Positions 2,006 through 42,444 of a stretch of 64,000 bases of DNA are shown here, piece after piece. The notes beneath the pieces are model-generated. The model was not told where the DNA came from, searched no databases, and saw nothing but the letters and a program-made list of their open reading frames with translations. The stretch lies in the NCBI GenBank assembly GCA_907165135.1, contig OU015567.1, positions 7,502,001 to 7,566,000 of the forward strand, read 5' to 3'. Both the position numbers and the translations under genes were made by a program. This stretch comes from Oikopleura dioica. Taxonomy: Eukaryota; Animalia; Chordata. The stretch's first letter is position 1. Each line of letters begins with the position of its first letter.

Positions 2006-2994
2006 TTACTCGTCGATTATTTCATGAACTTTTGCAATGTGAGTGTCAACTCGAATCTGGAGATTTTCAAGAAAGTCTGTTTGAATATTGTATGCGCCAA
2101 GGGAAGAGAGCTCTTCTGTGATTGCCAGCAGCTTTTGCTTCAACTCGAGATTTTGACTTTCGAGTTCGTCGATGCGGCCCTCGAGCATCATCTGATTTGT
2201 GGGTCTATAATATGGCGATAAGAGAGGCTTCTGGTTTGTAGAAATGTACCTGATATTATCAAGCAAGTTCGAGAGACGGTTGGTTACGTCTTCAAGTTTG
2301 CCTGATCTCGGAGCAGGGGATTGAGGGATGTAATTCGGCGTGTAGTATTCCGTAGCGGATCCAAATCGACTATCCTTTAATTTTTCGGCAGGTGTGAAGT
2401 ACATCGGTTTTTCTTTCTTCATCAAATTTATCGTCACATTTTCAGAGGGAGTCATGTAGATCGACTTTTCGAGGGCAAGTTTCGAAGCTTGCTTCTGCTC
2501 ATTTGGCGTTTCAAACTTCGTCAAGTTTTCATTCAAATCTTTTGCGAAGGATTGCTCGTTGTCATTTGTTATTTCATGGAAGATGCGCCCTTTGGAGTCT
2601 TTAATTTCAGACTGATCGTCGCTAAATTCTTCCACGCAGCTGTGAAATGCGTCCGAGTCCATGTCAGAGAAGATGTTTTTTGCTGGACTGTTCACTGAAA
2701 GAAAAACGGTTCAAGATAGTAGGAAGAGTCATTCTTACCTCTTGGCAGTGGAAGTTTATTTTCCTTCTGGATACTCTTTCTCTGTGGTGTTTCACTGTTG
2801 ATGACGGATATGTCTGGAATATGGAAGGTGACTTCTTTCGGCGATCGTTTGTTGAAAGGAGTTGAGGTCTGCTTGTTCTTGTTCGTCAAAATTCCTGGAG
2901 AAGGGAAGTTGCAGCTCTCATCTGCTTGAATTCTTGCGAGAAAGGGAGATTGGAGCTTCTTTCGAGGAGTCGAAAACATTTCAGGCTTTTCCAT
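2006..2994 (-). CDS. Uncharacterised disordered S/T-P-rich protein with C-terminal coiled coil (2 exons)
   Basis: ORFs 2692-2994 and 2006-2695 are joined by a short GT-AG intron near 2700-2737. It lies 73-102 bp from its neighbours in the operon-like array. Confidence 0.6.
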
Positions 2995-3066
2995 TTTTCA
3001 GTCCTACTTTTCAATTTCCAAGGTCTGAAATAAGGATTGTCATTATTTTTACATTTCGAAAGAGAT

Positions 3067-4960
3067 TTAGTCGGATAAAGTATCATTTTCTTCAAGAAAC
3101 AGATCCACAGATTCCTCATCGAGAAAGTCTTTCAATCTATCCACTCTTCTATCTGGCAGGCAGAAATCTACAGTATTTGTCATTTCTCTGCTCTCGCTAG
3201 TTATAAAGTCATCGTAGCCATCAGAATAATCGAAAATATATGGCCAGTCGCTTTCTTGAAGATAAGTTTTTGTATCACGGTTGTATTTGAGGCCGAATTT
3301 TCCGATTTCTCCATGTCGACATTTGTGAATCTAAAAAACTCTTAACAAAGATTAAAGTTGATTTCGAAGATACCTGTATCCAATCTTTCCGGACCCCGGT
3401 TTCGATATCCTGTGATGTTTGAAGTATGATTACATTATCGGCTTCCTGGACTGATCTCGCTCTCCCAGAGAGGTCATATTCCGTCAAAAATGAGTACCCA
3501 TCTTTCTTGCTGACATTGCTTGTTTTTCGCGGGTGACAGATTACTGTTACGTGAACATCGGTAAATGTAGCTAATTCACGCAGCATTCTTATCGTGTTAT
3601 CTAAGAAATGGTAATTAATAATTATTCAGTTTTAAATTGGTAGGTTATTTACCTTGGCTCATGTAAGCATCGTCCGAGCTCGTTCCAAATATCAGAAACT
3701 GCATATTATCGATAATTATATGATCGATTCTATGATTCTCTATCAGTTCTTTCAGCTTATCAACAAGCTCATTAGGATCCATCGAGCCTGGCTCGGAATT
3801 CAACGCTAGAATTCCAAGATTTCCAAGTTTTTCCTGAACGAATTCGTATTCAATTTGGCAGTCTTCGGAAGATTTCTGGCAGAGTTGCATAGCCTGCATA
3901 TTTTGCAGCGCCTCTAGTTTCATTTCAAACGAGCACCAAAGCGTTTTTGCTCCATTGAGAGCCAAGTCTATCGAATATTCTGAGAGAAATGTTGTTTTTC
4001 CCTTTCCTGTGTGACCCGAGAAGAGTGTCAATTCTCCTTTCCGCAGGCCACCGAGATTTTCGTTGAGCATCGAGAACCGGGTAAATTTTATCGATTCCGC
4101 TGCAGTTTGACTTTGAACAAAAGATCGGGCCATATTCGCTCCAAGGTTGACTACATCGCCAGTTTCTCTGATCAGAACATTTAAAAGAGTAAGCGTGGAT
4201 CGATGATGCTTTGGTCGTGGAATTGACGAGCTAACGGTCGTTATTTTTGAGTCATCAAGATCCTCAAAGATATCTGGGTATTTAGCAACAAGCTGGCCTG
4301 GCCAGATTATAATTTCCTTTTTCATCTCCAGAATTGTTCTTTTGAAGAGTGAAGAGTTTTCCGCGCCAGAAATGGGCAGCACGCCTTTTTGAATTCTCGC
4401 AGCAGTAGGTTCCAAACAAAGGGCATCCCACTCGTCTTCAACAACGATCACACGGTCAAACTCGCGCCATGAAAATAAACCGGCATAATTGTGATTTCCC
4501 GTGCTCGGTACATATGAAAAGTTGTCAGGAGAGTCGTATATTTTGACAGCGTGGACATTTTCGTCGCGTAGAAAATTTTCATCCTCGTGAAAAGGAATAT
4601 CAACAAAGAGAACTCCATTTGATTTCAGGAATTTTAACCGCTCAACATTCTTATAATGAATCTGACTCATTGGGAGGGGAAATTTAACTTCATGCTCGTC
4701 AAGAATCGTTTGAAATCTCGCCTCGTAATCCCTTGATGAAAATTTTAATCGAGAAAATTGACGGAGTAGAAAAATTACCCTTCCAGAATCTTCGAGCTTT
4801 CGAGCAAGTTTTTAGCTTCGCAAAAATGATATAAGGCCCCGAGCTTCTGACAAAAATATGTTTTTCTGTTCCCATACAACTTGAATGAATCCTCAGATAA
4901 ATGCGATGACCTTCGCTTTAGCACGATTGTTCTGACGTAGTTCTGCGTACACGTGCGCAT
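3067..4960 (-). CDS. TWNK: Twinkle mitochondrial replicative DNA helicase (SF4)
   Basis: GGLRKGELTLFSGHTGKGKTTFLSEYSIDL (Walker A), WCSFEM, HIIIDNMQF (Walker B), VICHPRK, QEADNVIIL. The last exon 3330-3067 reads IHKCRHGEIGKFGLKYN...DTLSD*. Confidence 0.92.
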
Positions 4961-34804: not shown

Positions 34805-35714
34805 TTACGGCCCGATTCCTAACGGCTCGTCGTACCAGTATTTGAAGCCAGCACGTGCGCGCACTTGAGCAGCTAGAACGGGAAAATTTGAGATGCTTTG
34901 TTGTGAGGGTAAGTATTGTACCTGAGTTTGCTGAAGCGCGTGTTGCCGGGCGCTAGAAAGAGAACAGTCAGTGCGGCTATCATCATCTGACAATAGAGAG
35001 GGTCCCGATCATCTTTATTGTTTGACTAGTCTTTTGAAAGTAGTCTCATGCGGATATTATGAAATCGAGGAAGAATATAAAAAAAATATGAGTTGCTTTT
35101 GCATGGGAATTCTCCTTGACAACTCCTACGGGAAATCGAGCTTGACAATATCATAAAGATAAAGTCGAACTTGTTCTTTTTCGACTTGAATATGGGCCAA
35201 CTCATACCTTGAAAGACTCAGTATACTCAGTTTTACATCTGAGCATATTTGGGGCAGTTCTACATCTAACCATCGGGACTGGCCTCCGTTGATCCTCAAG
35301 CCCTTCCATATTATTTCTAAGCTTCGCATAATGATCAGTTCTTCTATTCTTCAGCTGTGCCCACTCCTCTCTCGTCCAAAAGGACATCAATCCGTTCGGA
35401 TAATTGTTCATTCTAGTAAAAACTCTCTCGTCTGACAAAAAGTGGAAACTCTTTTCTAACCCTAATCCGGAAATCTTGAAGCCACTCTTGTGCCGTAGCA
35501 GGTCGCTATTGACAATGGCGCTGGCGTGTGGTGGGGATATTTGCTTACCTTAGACTCTGATAAAAGCTGCAATCGTAAATGATACGTGTCAGGCACGGCT
35601 GTTGTTTGTAAAACTTTCAGCATTATTGCTTTATGCAGTGTATTTTGCTTGTCAAATACTGCTGTCTTTTGACATTTACTGTATTCTTTTTCTTCTGAGA
35701 TTTGCAGTTTCATA
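34805..35714 (-). CDS. Possible uncharacterised multi-exon gene, head-to-head with BRCA2
   Basis: Short minus-strand ORFs (35462-35737, 35202-35438, 35126-35329, 34805-34993) with GT/AG boundaries. Phases could not be fully reconciled. Confidence 0.3.
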
Positions 35715-35764
35715 TAGTCTTCTTTGATTTCCCTCAAAAAATCATCAATTTACAATTCTAGACA

Positions 35765-38700
35765 ATGGATGAATCGGACGACAGCTTTTTATACCCGAAG
35801 GGAGATGATTCTCTTGTGTACAGCCATCCCAACAATATCTTCGAACCGAATAACTCCGAGATCGCGTATATAAAAAGCGAGCTTCCCAAATGTGACGACT
35901 CAGCGAGCCAGATTAATACGTCTAGTCAACTTGCGCAGAAATTACTCGACGATGAAAGCTTTGTGATTCCAGAATTAAATTCAGAAAGTGTTTCTGAACC
36001 CGGCCCAGCGCCACAGGAAAGGGCTTGAATGAGTTCGAAAGAAAAGTAACGAGTTAGTGTCTTTGTATTGAACTCGACAAAAGCCCTTATTGAAGCTGCT
36101 GTTCACAACGGGAGATCTGCAAAGTAAACTTTCCACAAGAAGCCTCAAATTCAATAAGGACCTTTTTGCGGATCTCGATGGCCCTTTGGTATCAAAAGAA
36201 AACCAAAGAAACAAGCCGAGAGGCCTTCCGACGACCGGAAATAAACGAACAGTCACATATGGGAAGAAATACTGGAGTCAGAAATTAAAAGAAGACGATC
36301 CTGACGACGATTTCAGTCAAGAGCTGACATCGCAGTACTTCGTCAAGCTTCAAACTCAAAAATCAGTGCAAACAAATGCTATTCCAGCGAAAGAAAAAGT
36401 TCAAAACGGTGACGAAGACGATGAATTCGACTTCTCCGCGTACAAGCCACCACCAAAGAGCTCATTCAAACCTCCCTCGAAAAACACATCGAAGATCCAC
36501 AATTCAGTTGAGACGATTTTCAATAAGGATTTCTGAGTGAAATCCTTACCCCCCTCTTTTATTTGCTTGTTAGAAAGAGCGTAAAAAGTTACACTAGAAA
36601 CACTGAAAAAATCAAGAGATTTTCAAAATATTGACCTCGTGCCACGTGACTGAAGTTCCAAAAGTACCATTTCTTTCGGACATCGGCATTTCCAAGTCCT
36701 CTTAGCTGAGCAGGCATGCGATACATGAAAATGATCGTCTTGTCGAGCTCTACATCGGCATCTTGGTTTCAATCCTTGTAATTTAGTTTTCCATCCCTTT
36801 CTAAAATCAGCTGTTTGCTGAAAATATTGATTTCGAGAAAAAAGGGATGAAAAGGTTTGAGACTGACACGCCGATGTAGAGCTCGACGAGACGATCATTT
36901 TCATGTATCGCATGCCTGCGTACCTAAGAGTAGTCGGAAATGCCGATGTCCGGAAGAAAAGGTACTTTTGGAACTTCAATCACGTGCTATGACGTAATAA
37001 CTTCAAAAATTTCATCCTTTTTTGGTGGAATCTGGCATAACTTTTTACGCTCTTTTAAATGAGCTAATAAAAAAGGGGGGTAAGGATTTCACTCAGAATT
37101 CCTTATTGAAAATCGTCTGAGTTGCTGAAAAGATTTGATCAATCTGTCGCCACTTCACTTTTTACAACAGGAGCAGGCTCAACCATTGCTCTTCCTGGAG
37201 TTCCTTTACCAAACAATATCCAGTCTCCTTCTGTATTTGCCAGTCCTAAAAATCCTCTCAAGGAAGTCGGAAATGATAAGAAAGCGTTTGCAGCTGTCGA
37301 GGGAAGGAAACTACCGCTTTCTGAGGTTGATATGAATCAAATAGTTCCTAAGAGTCCGAGAGAAACGAGCTTGGATGTTTCGTTCGATCCATCGCAAGCC
37401 CTTTTCACCAATTCGCCTTATGGAGCGAGTCCGATTTACAAGTCTGAAGATACGGATAAACCAAAGAAATCATCCGAAAATTTGAGGAAGGATATCTTTC
37501 AAGGCTTGGACGATTCCTTCGAATTCAAAGGATTCCAAACTGGACTCGGAGTCCCTGCTAAAATTGATGAAGCAGCCTTGCAAGCAGTTCGGGCTGCTGG
37601 CCCTGAAAGCAAGAACACTGGCTTTGAGAACTGCTTGGGAGTCAAGGCGAAAATTGATGAATCGGCGATCAGTGCAAGTAAGCAGCTCTTGAATACATCT
37701 AACGAGCCCGCCGCTTCTGCCAAGACTGCCGACGTTGACGACGAGTTTAGTCAGGATTTGACATCGCAGTATTTTCTGAAGCTCCCAACTCAAACAGCGC
37801 CTCAACTAAAGAACACTGGCTTCCAAAATTGTCATGGAGTAGCGCCCAAAATAGATGAAAATGCACTCAAAGCTGTCCGAGCTGGGAATCCTCAAAAGTC
37901 ACCTGAAAGAAAGAACACTGGATTTCAGAACTGTTTCGGCGTAGAAGCAAAAATTTACGAAAAAGCTCTGAAAGCTGTTCGAGCTAACAACCCTCCCGGT
38001 TCTCCAGAAAAGAAGAATACCGGATTTCAGAATTGCTTTGGAGAAAAAGCGAAAATTGACGAAAACGCGCTGAAAGCTGTTCGTGCCGCGGACCCTTCAC
38101 GGTTGCTTGAAAGAAAGAATACTGGCTTTCAGAATTGTTTGGGTGTCAAAACGAAAATAGATGAATCAGCGCTCCAAGCTGTTCGTGGTGCAGATGCTCT
38201 TACGTCGCTTGAACGACAGAACACTGGATTTCAAAATTGTTTTGGCGTCAAAGCTAAAATTGATGAATCCGCTCTACAAGCTGTCCGAAGCTCTAACCCT
38301 CCGAAATCGTTTGAAATAAGGAATACAGGATTTCAAACTGCCCATGGCGTCCCAATGCAAGTGAATGAGGACGCACTGCGAGCGGTTAAAAATTCCACAA
38401 GCTTGAATCAGAATACCTCTAAGCCGGAGTTCAGAGGCTTTCAAACATGCCTTGGTACCCAAGTCAAACCTGATGAAGCTGAACTCAATTATGTCAGAGG
38501 AAAGGAAGAGAAATCCGTGTCGGTGGCAGACAACTCTCAGAATACCACAGCTGAAAATATGAATGCGAAGATGGACATGCTTATCTCTGAAATACCCAAG
38601 GAACCTTCAAAATCTGCTACATGTCCATCACAAGCGTTTTTCGCTGATGTCTGGGAAAAAGATCTGAAAAAAGAACGAGAAATGAATCCTTTCGCAAAGC

Positions 38701-41700
38701 CACCTCCGAATGCAGATCAGCCCAAGCCGACTATCCAAAAAGAAAATGTTGCAAAGCCAGATTTACCGAAGTCAACAATCCAATACAGAGAACTTCCAAA
38801 ACCAGATTTCGCGATCAAGCCATCTATCAAGCGAAAGTCTGACGAGAATGAATTTCCGGCGAAGAAGTTCAAGCCATCTCATTCGTCATCAGCAACTGAA
38901 TCGTTCATTCCTCCTTCTAAAGAACCAAAACCTCCAGAACATAAAGAAGCGAAGAGAAAGAGTCTCGATGAATTCATGGCAAAATTTGTTTCCGAAACTT
39001 GTCTAAATTCAATTCATTTGCCCACCAGTTTGCGTCATCCTCCTCTCGAATCGTTGTGGGAGGAGTATAGAGATCTGCCAGACGAACCAACCGCGGAGAC
39101 AAATATTGAATGTGAAGCGGATACAGATATTGAATGTGAAGCGGATACAGAGCTTATTAATAAACAAGAATCGGATTGTCAACCTTCTCAGCCGCCACGC
39201 AAGTACGTCTATGTTCAACGCTTACCAGAGCCAAAGCCAGAAGAAGTAAATGAACGAAGCTATCAGTTTTGTGCTAATTTCTTTCATCCGGAAACTGACT
39301 CCATTATGTACAAATACGCTCTTCTTGCGGATGAACTGCGTCTCAAAGAGTTGCAAGCAAAGTTGACCAGTGTCAAAAGATCTTCTTCATTCGCCATTCC
39401 AGTAAAATCGGCTGCTAAGAACAATTCGAAGCACAGTACTCCCATCCCTACTCGAAGTAACAAACCCGTCAAATCTCCAGATCTTGCTCTTAGTCCGATA
39501 AAAGAAGCGAAATCATCGGAGACAACCGGTATGATTAAATATATCGCGGAAGAAGATGAAGACTTCGATATGGACCTTGACGAAGAAACAGAAGATCGTG
39601 TCATGTCTGAAGAAGAAGTAAAGCAATTAAATGCATTGATCAGGAAGATCGACGAGGAGATCGATTGTCGGAAGAAAAGTCAAGAAAACCGCTACGGAGT
39701 GCTGTTCCAAAGCAAGAAATACTACACCGAAAGAGGCCAGACGATTCCATTGAGTCAGTTCAAGCCGCAAGTAAATACAGAGGATGAGCCTGCTGATCCA
39801 GAGCGCAATTTCAACTTGTTCGACTTTTGGCCAAAGGAAGATATTTTGGCTGGTAAGAAAACGTCCGATGATGGAACATTCAGCTGCGCAGCAGATGGAA
39901 CTTTCGGCTCGCGACATATCCAGCGCACTCTTCACAGCTCGACGATCAATAGCTCGTTCCACTCTAAATTGTCAATTAACTGGGTAGAAAATCACGCCAA
40001 ACTCGTCAAGCAAAAGCTCGCTGGATACAACAACTATCTCGATCACGAACTGCGCGAAAAGGTCTTCACCCCCGACGCGTTAGTCGACCAACTTCGACTC
40101 AGGGCTGACTTGGAATTTATCGACGGAAAGAGAAGTCTCATTGTGAAGATTTCCGAGCAGGATGTTGCTCCGGCTATGCCTGCTGTTCTTTTCATTTCCT
40201 CCAAGGAGCCTCTCAGGTATTTCGTTTCTATTAAGACGCTTTTAATTAATTCTGAATAGACTATCAGATGGCTGGTACGAAATCAAATGCGATGGCGATG
40301 CTTTGATAAAGCAGCGTCTTGAAAAACTCCCAATCGGTTCCAAAATCCTCATTTGTGGCGCAACCCTTGCCAAAGACGCTCAAGCTTCACACCCGTTGGA
40401 GAATATTTCCGAAATTCACATAACCGCGAATTCCACGAAGCGCGTAAAATGGTATACGAAACTTGGGCCGTTTTACAAAAACGTTACGCCTTCGACATTA
40501 TCTTCTATTTCCTCCTCTGGCAGGAGTATTTACAAGCTGAAGCTGAAAATAACAAGAAAGTACCCAGATATTTGGCTTCAAGACAACCCAGCAAAAGAGA
40601 GCAAAGATAGACGAGTAGTTTTTTCAAAAAGACAGCGAGATCGATGGCATGCTCAGAAAGACAAAGATCTGGACAAGCAAAGAGAATCGCTCGCAGCAAG
40701 TATCAGGTAAATATATAAAATGATAAAATGCAAGATTTTATTCAAATCTTTAAAGAAAGAAACATCGAGAAAACCTCGACGAAGATCTAGCCAACTTGAC
40801 AATCAAAGAAATCAGCGTGCTAGACGATCCAGAAGAAATTTACACTGCAGTCACGCTTTCAAAAGACCCAGAATATACAATTTCGAACTTGACTGAAGAA
40901 CAACGGCAGAAATACCAAAGTAAACACGCTTTTTGTCCGTCCAACAATTCACGCTCTTTTCAGAATTCGCCGAGAAGCAAAACTTCAAGATAAACGAGAC
41001 TTTCCAACGTGAGCAGCGACAATCCAGCGGAAAAACGACAAAGAAATTGAGATTTAAAGTCAAGGAGGGAAATAGAACCAATATTCTGCAAATTGATGAG
41101 AGCAAACTGCGCGACCAATCTCTGAAAGCAGGATCTATCGGTAATTCTAGCATTTGTAGTCCTCTGCTTCAAAGTGTCGCTTCTAGTGATCGTTGAAATG
41201 GCAAACATCGCATATCGAGGCCAAATCACAATCCCGAAAAACGGGATCGTGCGTGTCATTGAACAGGAATTCGTGAAACCTGAGTTGCCCGCAGAATACG
41301 CTAATATCCTTCCAGAACTCGCTGAGACCACAAAAGAGGTTGACATCGTTGGAATTGTCGTTCATCTTGCACCTACATCATGCGTACTTGCTGATAATAA
41401 GAAGCAGTTTGTAACTGTTCAGTTGGAGAAAAATACTTGGGACTTTGAAGCTCTCGACAAAATTGTTCTTGTCGGAGCTGTACTCGGTAATTAGCTTTCA
41501 AAGAAACACCCTCTTACCGTGCAAAATCTTAGCATTTAAAAACTTGGAAGTCGACCGCCAAAAAGCAGCGCAACTCAATTATACCCACGTCTCCGAAGTA
41601 CTTTCCCAGGTGTCCGACTTCCAGGGCTCTCGCGGCGCGCTTTTCAACCTCTTCAATGCTTACAACAAAGTGCTTGCTCGCTCCGGCCACGAGAAGTTCA

Positions 41701-41897
41701 TTTCTGCCTATCGATCTTCACCCAAATCTTCGTCCTTTTCTACACCGACGCGCCCCATACCGAATTCTTCAATAAACCCAACCACTCCCCTTAGTTCCAG
41801 AAAACCACCCGGAAATGCCGATCGAATGCACCAGCTGGAAATGGCAGAAGAGAAGTGGTCCCGCTCGAGCTTCTCTTTCAACCAAACCTCAAACTAA
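35765..41897 (+). CDS. BRCA2: BRCA2 (BRC-like repeats; helical, OB1, tower, OB2 and OB3 DNA-binding domain)
   Basis: WVENH..QLRLRADLEFIDGKRS..LSDGWYEI..GSKILICGATL..HPLE..ITANSTKRVKWYTKLG (OB1), tower YTAVTLSKDPEY, OB3 EVDIVGIV; nine BRC-like repeats. Confidence 0.92.
36513..37116. mobile_element. 604-bp fold-back MITE inside BRCA2 coding sequence, forming an intron
   Basis: The arms acgattttcaataagga(t/a)ttctgagtgaaatccttacccc... are inverted over ~290 bp each around an ~18-nt loop. Flanks are TTGAG (36508-12) and CTGAG (37117-21). Confidence 0.9.
37520..38510 (+). repeat. Nine BRC-like repeats; repeats 3-8 in exact 102-nt period
   Basis: The NTGFQNC.G..AKIDE.AL.AVR unit starts at ~37812, 37914, 38016, 38118, 38220 and 38322, with flanking copies at ~37524, 37613 and 38430. 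Confidence 0.85.
39103..39150 (+). repeat. 24-nt x2 coding tandem duplication in BRCA2 (IECEADTD/E)
   Basis: atattgaatgtgaagcggatacag is repeated twice. Confidence 0.85.
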
Positions 41898-42444
41898 TCA
41901 AGTTCAATCTAATTATCCCCTCCTCATCCCCTTCCTGTCCCATTTTTCTCACTACCATGAACATGTTCGATAAGTTTACAACTCACTAATTATAAAGAAA
42001 ACACCAACCATTTCACCCTCATTTTTACGATTCAGTCGATCAAAATCGGAATCGATAACAATCATCTCCTCCATTCCTCGATCCTCTATTCTCTTTTATG
42101 ATACCGCTTTTGCGTACTCTACCACTCTCTACTGACACTCGAGATAGGCTTTTTACGAAGCTTCGTTTTTTCTTTGTGATTCTACTATTTTCGCCAATGC
42201 GTGAGAAATTCGTTGACCAGTGCTTTAACTCAGCGCCCGCGGTCATGTGAAATTCTAGCTTTTTTTCAGAACCATTTTTTCACCACTACCCTTTTGTCTG
42301 ACAGAGAATTACCCAAAGAAATCAAGAGCGACTTGACATGTTAGTATACTTTTCACAAATAGATACAGTATTTTATCTCAGGAATATATTTTGATAACAC
42401 GACATTTAACATAAAGCAACATTTGTCAGTCCGACAAATTAAGA

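Follow-up and report, generated by a model that had tools for sequence, protein, structure and literature searches.

Introns derived from transposons

Transposons are a known source of introns in larvaceans and in many protists (PMC11282704, PMC9860276, PMC3443670). Introners, which are introns derived from DNA transposons, have been found in Micromonas, Aureococcus, Symbiodinium and others (Huff 2016; Gozashti 2022, PMC9860276); they are characterised by absence from the orthologous site of close relatives, where no earlier intron existed, by precise removal from the mRNA, by splice sites that come from the element and/or its target site duplication (TSD), and by numerous similar copies that form introns in many genes. 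The larvacean Fritillaria borealis has MITE-derived introns that are mostly AG-AC or AG-AT, fixed and supported by RNA, and a permissive U2 spliceosome has been proposed to neutralise insertions there (Henriet et al. 2019, cited through PMC11282704).

In the window analysed here, a stretch of 64 kb of Oikopleura dioica DNA, a coding exon of BRCA2 is interrupted by a fold-back transposon. Like introners, this is a short non-autonomous element with terminal inverted repeats (TIRs) and a short TSD, it lies in an exon that is unbroken in relatives, and it is missing from the orthologous site, where no intron had existed. Its possible AG would come from the TSD together with the flanking base, and its removal would change one or two codons. 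Unlike in introners, the candidate GT is an old host codon that belongs neither to the element nor to its TSD, a single genic copy was seen, and the candidate splicing is a prediction on paper. With the Fritillaria borealis introns it shares the animal class, the MITE origin and the permissive U2 spliceosome, whereas the options in BRCA2 are predicted GT-AG or GA-AG pairs at host bases. The insertion is not an established intron and it probably harms BRCA2. The reading that we favour, with moderate confidence, is that of a young, polymorphic insertion of 606 nt with a TGA duplication in a BRCA2 exon that would most likely produce an impaired allele. In maize, exonic insertions of Ds, dSpm and Mu are spliced out via cryptic sites, usually giving leaky alleles for which there is transcript evidence. 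The BRCA2 insertion resembles these alleles in being exonic and in that the harm depends on nearby cryptic donors and acceptors; it differs from them in that the maize cases are backed by transcripts and the removal here is predicted only.

Anatomy of the fold-back element

The element is non-autonomous, occupies 606 nt (36512-37117) and has the termini GACGATT...AATCGTC; it was delimited by its inverted repeat, its hairpin fold and its absence from the genome OKI2018_I69. The inverted repeat, at 36511-37118, has arms of 272 nt with a complementarity of 82% ungapped and 83% gapped. The flanking open reading frames (36090-36536 and 37122-40259) share one common frame and carry Pfam BRCA2 domains, in agreement with the original prediction that the BRCA2 frame runs into a hairpin. 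The description of this hairpin as near-perfect holds for the outer ~45 nt, in which the first 45 arm positions counted from 36511 pair with 1 mismatch, and does not hold for the remainder of the arms, which pair at about 80%. The best-conserved part of the left TIR is at 36512-36555 and the right TIR, its mirror, at 37074-37117. The RNA of the element folds as one hairpin (-379 kcal/mol, z = -26.8 compared to shuffles). Among the arm mismatches there are 15 G:U against 11 A:C; this absence of strand bias gives no indication that the fold of the sense-strand RNA is under selection.

The site has gained exactly 609 nt (element plus TSD), a number divisible by three. Both junctions read TGAG, which allows several splits between element and host, three of them with symmetric termini. 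A perfect 3-bp duplication of TGA, with the left copy at 36509-36511 and the right copy at 37118-37120, appears to be the best and simplest of them, because it gives symmetric termini without any mutation; it also fits the exact onset of the match at 36512 in four contigs of the DNA run X6 and in RNA reads from other copies. Both copies of TGA were placed by means of the empty site, ..CAGT TGA GTTGCTG.., in the OKI2018_I69 sequence (L001:3950-3963) and in X6 contigs. A 5-bp TSD (TTGAG/CTGAG) was rejected, as it includes one mismatch and needs an extra mutation, on the side opposite to the one originally assumed. That earlier proposal involved a C>T change in the left flank, but the empty alleles read TTGAG, i.e. 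the left flank is the original one. Termini AGACG...CGTCT with a 1-bp TSD would be symmetric too, but no cut-and-paste class of this kind is known to us. The duplications of hAT (8 bp) and of Mutator or Foldback elements (9-10 bp) are absent at the insertion.

The C at 37117 is read as the last base of the element, and what looks like CTGAG is then the C of the element, TGA and a host G. The right flank does therefore provide an AG, as had been expected, although the C is not part of the flank and the AG consists of the A of the TSD and a host G. The target of NuwaII transposons is C|TNA|G, a context in which a 3-bp TNA duplication is indistinguishable from a 5-bp CTNAG, the former being favoured (PMC4482050). 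The CTNAG target that the original prediction named for this group agrees with that paper, and the 5-bp reading follows from this ambiguity together with an element that ends in C. Like NuwaII of the PHIS group (PIF/Harbinger-ISL2EU-Spy), the BRCA2 element has a 3-bp TSD of the TNA form followed by G, and its site comes close to the NuwaII target. Unlike NuwaII, the 5' base of its target is T instead of C (T|TGA|G), and its shared terminus of ~40 nt starts with GACG and not with GG; NuwaII TIRs measure 13-46 bp and most start with GG, which is a tendency and not a rule (PMC4482050). Neither TNA nor CTNAG is present in the few foreign flanks seen for other copies of the family, which read ..ATT|G and C|TTT... 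No autonomous partner encoding a DDE transposase and a Myb/SANT protein between the termini of the element was found in the 64-kb window, and membership of NuwaII is unproven.

A protein word search with the 118-aa ORF of the element gave no relatives, and exact look-ups of this ORF and of a truncated upstream ORF gave no match. In Rfam the element had only sub-threshold matches to plant miRNA precursors, on both strands, which we attribute to a generic effect of long hairpins.

Empty sites and age of the insertion

The protein model of OKI2018_I69 (P0001) crosses the site as ..IQNSVELLKRFDQ.. and the corresponding DNA (L001:3950-3965) reads ..cagttgagttgctg... In the alignment L001 follows the left flank as far as its position 3956 and the right flank from its position 3953 onwards, with tca gtt gag ttg ctg uninterrupted. 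A second set of empty alleles was found in X6, a DNA run filed under another organism label. One X6 contig tracks the left flank to 36512 and then continues as TTGCTGAAA; in two others that match from 37118 the match is preceded by AAGATCCACAATTCAGT, so that AAGATCCACAATTCAGT is joined to TGAGTTGCTG... Over the 17 bases of its empty site X6 has the codon CAC, as in the window, versus CAA in OKI2018. The Bergen genome (L002:3812-3850, tca gtt gaa tcc gcg atc gtt) also has unbroken coding sequence at the site, and the same is true of a metagenome ORF from another lineage, P0003, the sole match in a word search with P0001:140-420 across the junction.

These empty sites in OKI2018_I69 and X6 and the continuous coding sequences in Bergen and P0003 indicate clearly that the element was inserted into a formerly continuous BRCA2 exon without an earlier intron, and that the insertion is young and polymorphic, with the empty site present in other animals of the same lineage. 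An old intron invaded later by a transposon is ruled out by the empty sites. Two parts of the original prediction, the presence of a non-autonomous fold-back transposon (MITE) in BRCA2 coding sequence and the lack of a previous intron, are borne out by the hairpin and by these alleles (including Bergen OdB3 and the metagenome ORF). The empty site itself is not the one predicted: instead of TCA GCT GAG TTG, the comparison of alleles gave TCA GTT GAG TTG CTG. A mismatch in the TSD did not create the GT donor either, as had been supposed, for the GT is the start of a GTT Val codon that precedes the element by 5 nt, was already there before the insertion and is shared by OKI2018_I69, X6 and Bergen.

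Other copies of the element

The depth of X6 words was about 100-200 on the gene, about 600 in the middle of the element and 2100-4900 in the bins containing its ends; such depth is not a copy number and is only a rough sign, which indicates termini common to many copies and an inner part common to few. The four X6 contigs in which the exact match begins at 36512 have foreign flanks, and other copies in this run diverge past 36553. In the RNA runs X17 and X18 the matches are confined to 36512-36543 and 37087-37118, with foreign sequence on either side. Going by these matches, the element evidently belongs to a multi-copy family with shared termini of ~40 nt. A 32-nt terminus found in oligo-dT RNA from a Bergen-like lineage shows that diverged members of the family are transcribed in another cryptic species. 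Its presence there implies that the terminus predates the split of the cryptic species and that the BRCA2 copy is recent. Within the window, blastn detected no second copy or matching termini elsewhere, and two TIR/arm patterns had no match in metagenome contigs.

The wide occurrence of the termini also bears on the chance that the hairpin is an assembly artefact, a fold-back chimera of long reads, of the kind in which long palindromes can form in long-read libraries. We consider this very improbable, given that the arms share only 83% identity and have no relation to the gene around them, that the insert is bounded by 3 bp of the empty site in clean duplicate, and that the same termini recur at many further locations in an independent DNA run as well as in RNA from another lineage.

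The interrupted BRCA2 gene

The coding exons of BRCA2 span approximately 35765-41897 on the forward strand, as determined from Pfam domains and from tblastn with P0001 (coverage 35765-41756). P0001, from Okinawa, was the top protein match of the locus and a Bergen OdB3 protein the second. The ORFs that flank the element contain the Pfam domains BRCA2 repeat, BRCA-2_helical and, further downstream, BRCA-2_OB1. The left half of the split exon (36096-36506, forward strand, frame 0) has 94.6% identity to OKI2018_I69 (L001:3645-3956). The right half (37122-40216, forward strand) is part of a 1045-aa ORF, identified by Pfam, that holds the BRC repeats and is followed by a native intron from 40217. 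The repeats include an array of 5 x 102 nt (5.2 copies of a unit of 102 nt, 34 aa) at 37808-38335.

If the message is not spliced, translation reaches an in-frame TGA stop at 36534-36536, 23-25 nt into the element, and the product ends ..NSVETIFNKDF*. This stop precedes all BRC repeats and the DNA-binding domain. All the exons of BRCA2 are intact on the haplotype that bears the insertion, as they would also be if the insertion is young.

A functional protein might be rescued without cis-splicing if the 1045-aa part were expressed alone, either by spliced leader (SL) trans-splicing at the AG that closes the element on the right or from a start within the element or beyond it. The product would be an N-terminally shortened BRCA2 with BRC repeats and DNA-binding domain preserved. 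SL trans-splicing is widespread in O. dioica, the AG at 37120-37121 immediately precedes the long ORF, and the first ATG of this ORF is codon 71. Such a rescue would cost about 290 N-terminal residues that are conserved between haplotypes, and we regard it as improbable.

Native introns and candidate splicing of the insertion

Six native BRCA2 introns were placed with P0001 as guide; they replaced an ab initio sample from ORF pairs of the window that was too noisy to be used (donor position +3 near-uniform). Five of them have GT donors (40217-40259, 40707-40755, 40920-40963, 41141-41186 and 41487-41532, all on the forward strand). Intron 1 (36017-36095, forward strand) is a GA-AG intron of 79 nt at a Q/L junction, shared with OKI2018_I69 and closed by a stem of AAGGGCTT and AAGCCCTT. 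All six measure 43-79 nt, the GT donors start with GTA in 5/5, and G was found at acceptor position -3 in 0/6. Intron 1 reads cag|GAAAGGGCTT ... AAGCCCTTATTGAAG|ctg, with further inner pairing of the type GAGTTCGA/TCGAACTC, and its paired ends make it look MITE-like. In both intron 1 and the element a terminal stem draws weak splice sites together. They differ in that intron 1 has 79 nt, is shared between haplotypes and has the AG|GAA context, versus 606 nt, a polymorphic presence and no such context in the element. About 11% of O. dioica introns are non-canonical (PMC8008620), and GA-AG introns are common in this species, normally with the context AG|GAA (PMC7072748).

Two candidate introns were considered for the element, both on the forward strand and on paper only. 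The GT-AG pair 36507-37121 (615 nt) would be removed in frame and free of stops with the loss of Val-Glu; translation confirmed the restored in-frame ..NSLLKR.. that the original prediction gave for it. The GA-AG pair 36510-37121 (612 nt) is also in frame and would lose Glu only. Some 26 further GN-AG pairs are in frame as well. The donor (tca|GTTGAG) and acceptor (..TCTGAG|) of 36507-37121 are both unlike those of the native introns, and its length is about ten times that of a native BRCA2 intron; 36510-37121 is without the AG|GAA donor context that intron 1 has. The final ~45 nt before the acceptor, in which the branch point would be located, are held in the 45-bp stem with its one mismatch. 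The element supplies no usable donor: the one nearer to the native form, GTGAAAT at 36537, lies directly behind the in-frame stop. The element therefore lacks the design of an introner. From the alleles compared, the candidate GT and AG are evidently host and junction bases that lie there by happenstance. A chance expectation was obtained by simulating an insertion of the element at each position along the 3.1-kb exon and scoring in-frame, stop-free pairs within 12 nt of its ends. GT-AG pairs of this kind were found at 11% of sites overall and at 16% of TNA sites, and GN-AG pairs at 41-46% of sites, which makes removability in frame weak evidence.

It is possible, though we doubt it, that the insertion is a newborn intron, removed in frame through either of the two pairs with the aid of the hairpin, which would place the two sites only a few bases apart, so that BRCA2 would remain functional and the insertion near-neutral. 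Both candidate removals are in frame and stop-free, the stem is separated by 2-5 nt from either donor and by 3 nt from the AG that follows it, and BRCA2 already holds a stem-closed GA-AG intron. Elsewhere, MITE-derived introns are reported for Fritillaria borealis (Henriet 2019, cited through PMC11282704), transposon insertion is named among the sources of Oikopleura introns (PMC3443670), and some known introners use splice sites of the TSD or the flanking sequence and add or drop codons (PMC9860276). All this has to be weighed against a donor and an acceptor unlike the native ones, the roughly tenfold length, a branch-point region buried in the terminal stem, the frequency with which such removability arises by chance, the lack of a donor in the element, and the absence of the insertion from both other data sets examined. 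That a permissive spliceosome excises the fresh hairpin by joining a weak host donor, GT or GA, to the AG of the junction, as the birth of an intron while still polymorphic, we consider rather unlikely.

An impaired allele remains our preferred explanation. An active transposon in a gene-dense genome would often land in exons, and such insertions may survive for some time as rare recessive alleles in heterozygotes. This one would at best be partly rescued by the inefficient use of weak cryptic sites, the GT at 36507 or GA at 36510 with the AG at 37121. Counted against an impaired allele are the permissive spliceosome, the stem-closed GA-AG intron 1, the intact exons and the 609 nt divisible by three.

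For RNA, three oligo-dT runs (X17-X19) were mapped over 35600-40800 and gave zero reads on BRCA2 exons at a likeness of at least 90%. The runs come from a Bergen-like lineage, an assignment based on the few reads at 35760-35791 that continue as TRDIEYNDSI, the N-terminus of the Bergen-type protein P0002.

If carriers do splice the element out, the locus would be a clean before-and-after case of the birth of an intron from a transposon in a chordate, with both alleles in one population and a BRCA2 loss-of-function phenotype that is easily scored. It would also connect the fast intron turnover of Oikopleura with the introns that arose from MITEs in Fritillaria. If carriers do not splice it out, it would be an ordinary young disruptive insertion, the fold-back family would still be active, and in a compact genome it would be expected to produce many exon insertions. 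The corrected anatomy (TGA duplication, ends G...C, GT from the host) matters for a genome-wide census of the family.

Divergence of BRCA2 haplotypes

Over BRCA2 (window 35765-41993 compared with L001) nucleotide identity is only 88-95% and protein identity about 82-87%. The genome-wide heterozygosity of the Okinawa animal is reportedly roughly 3.6%, and the divergence between the window and OKI2018_I69 in this gene is well above that level. Run X6 holds an OKI-like haplotype at 36342-36385. About 1.1 kb of the BRC-repeat array (window 37760-38897) is missing from the OKI2018_I69 sequence (L001:4577-4598), which could represent either copy-number variation or collapse in one assembly. An X6 contig omits 64 nt at 39100-39165, within a 24-nt tandem repeat (39093-39151) that encodes ..ECEADTDI... 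This length polymorphism in BRCA2 coding sequence is, as reported, not a multiple of three (one extra G).
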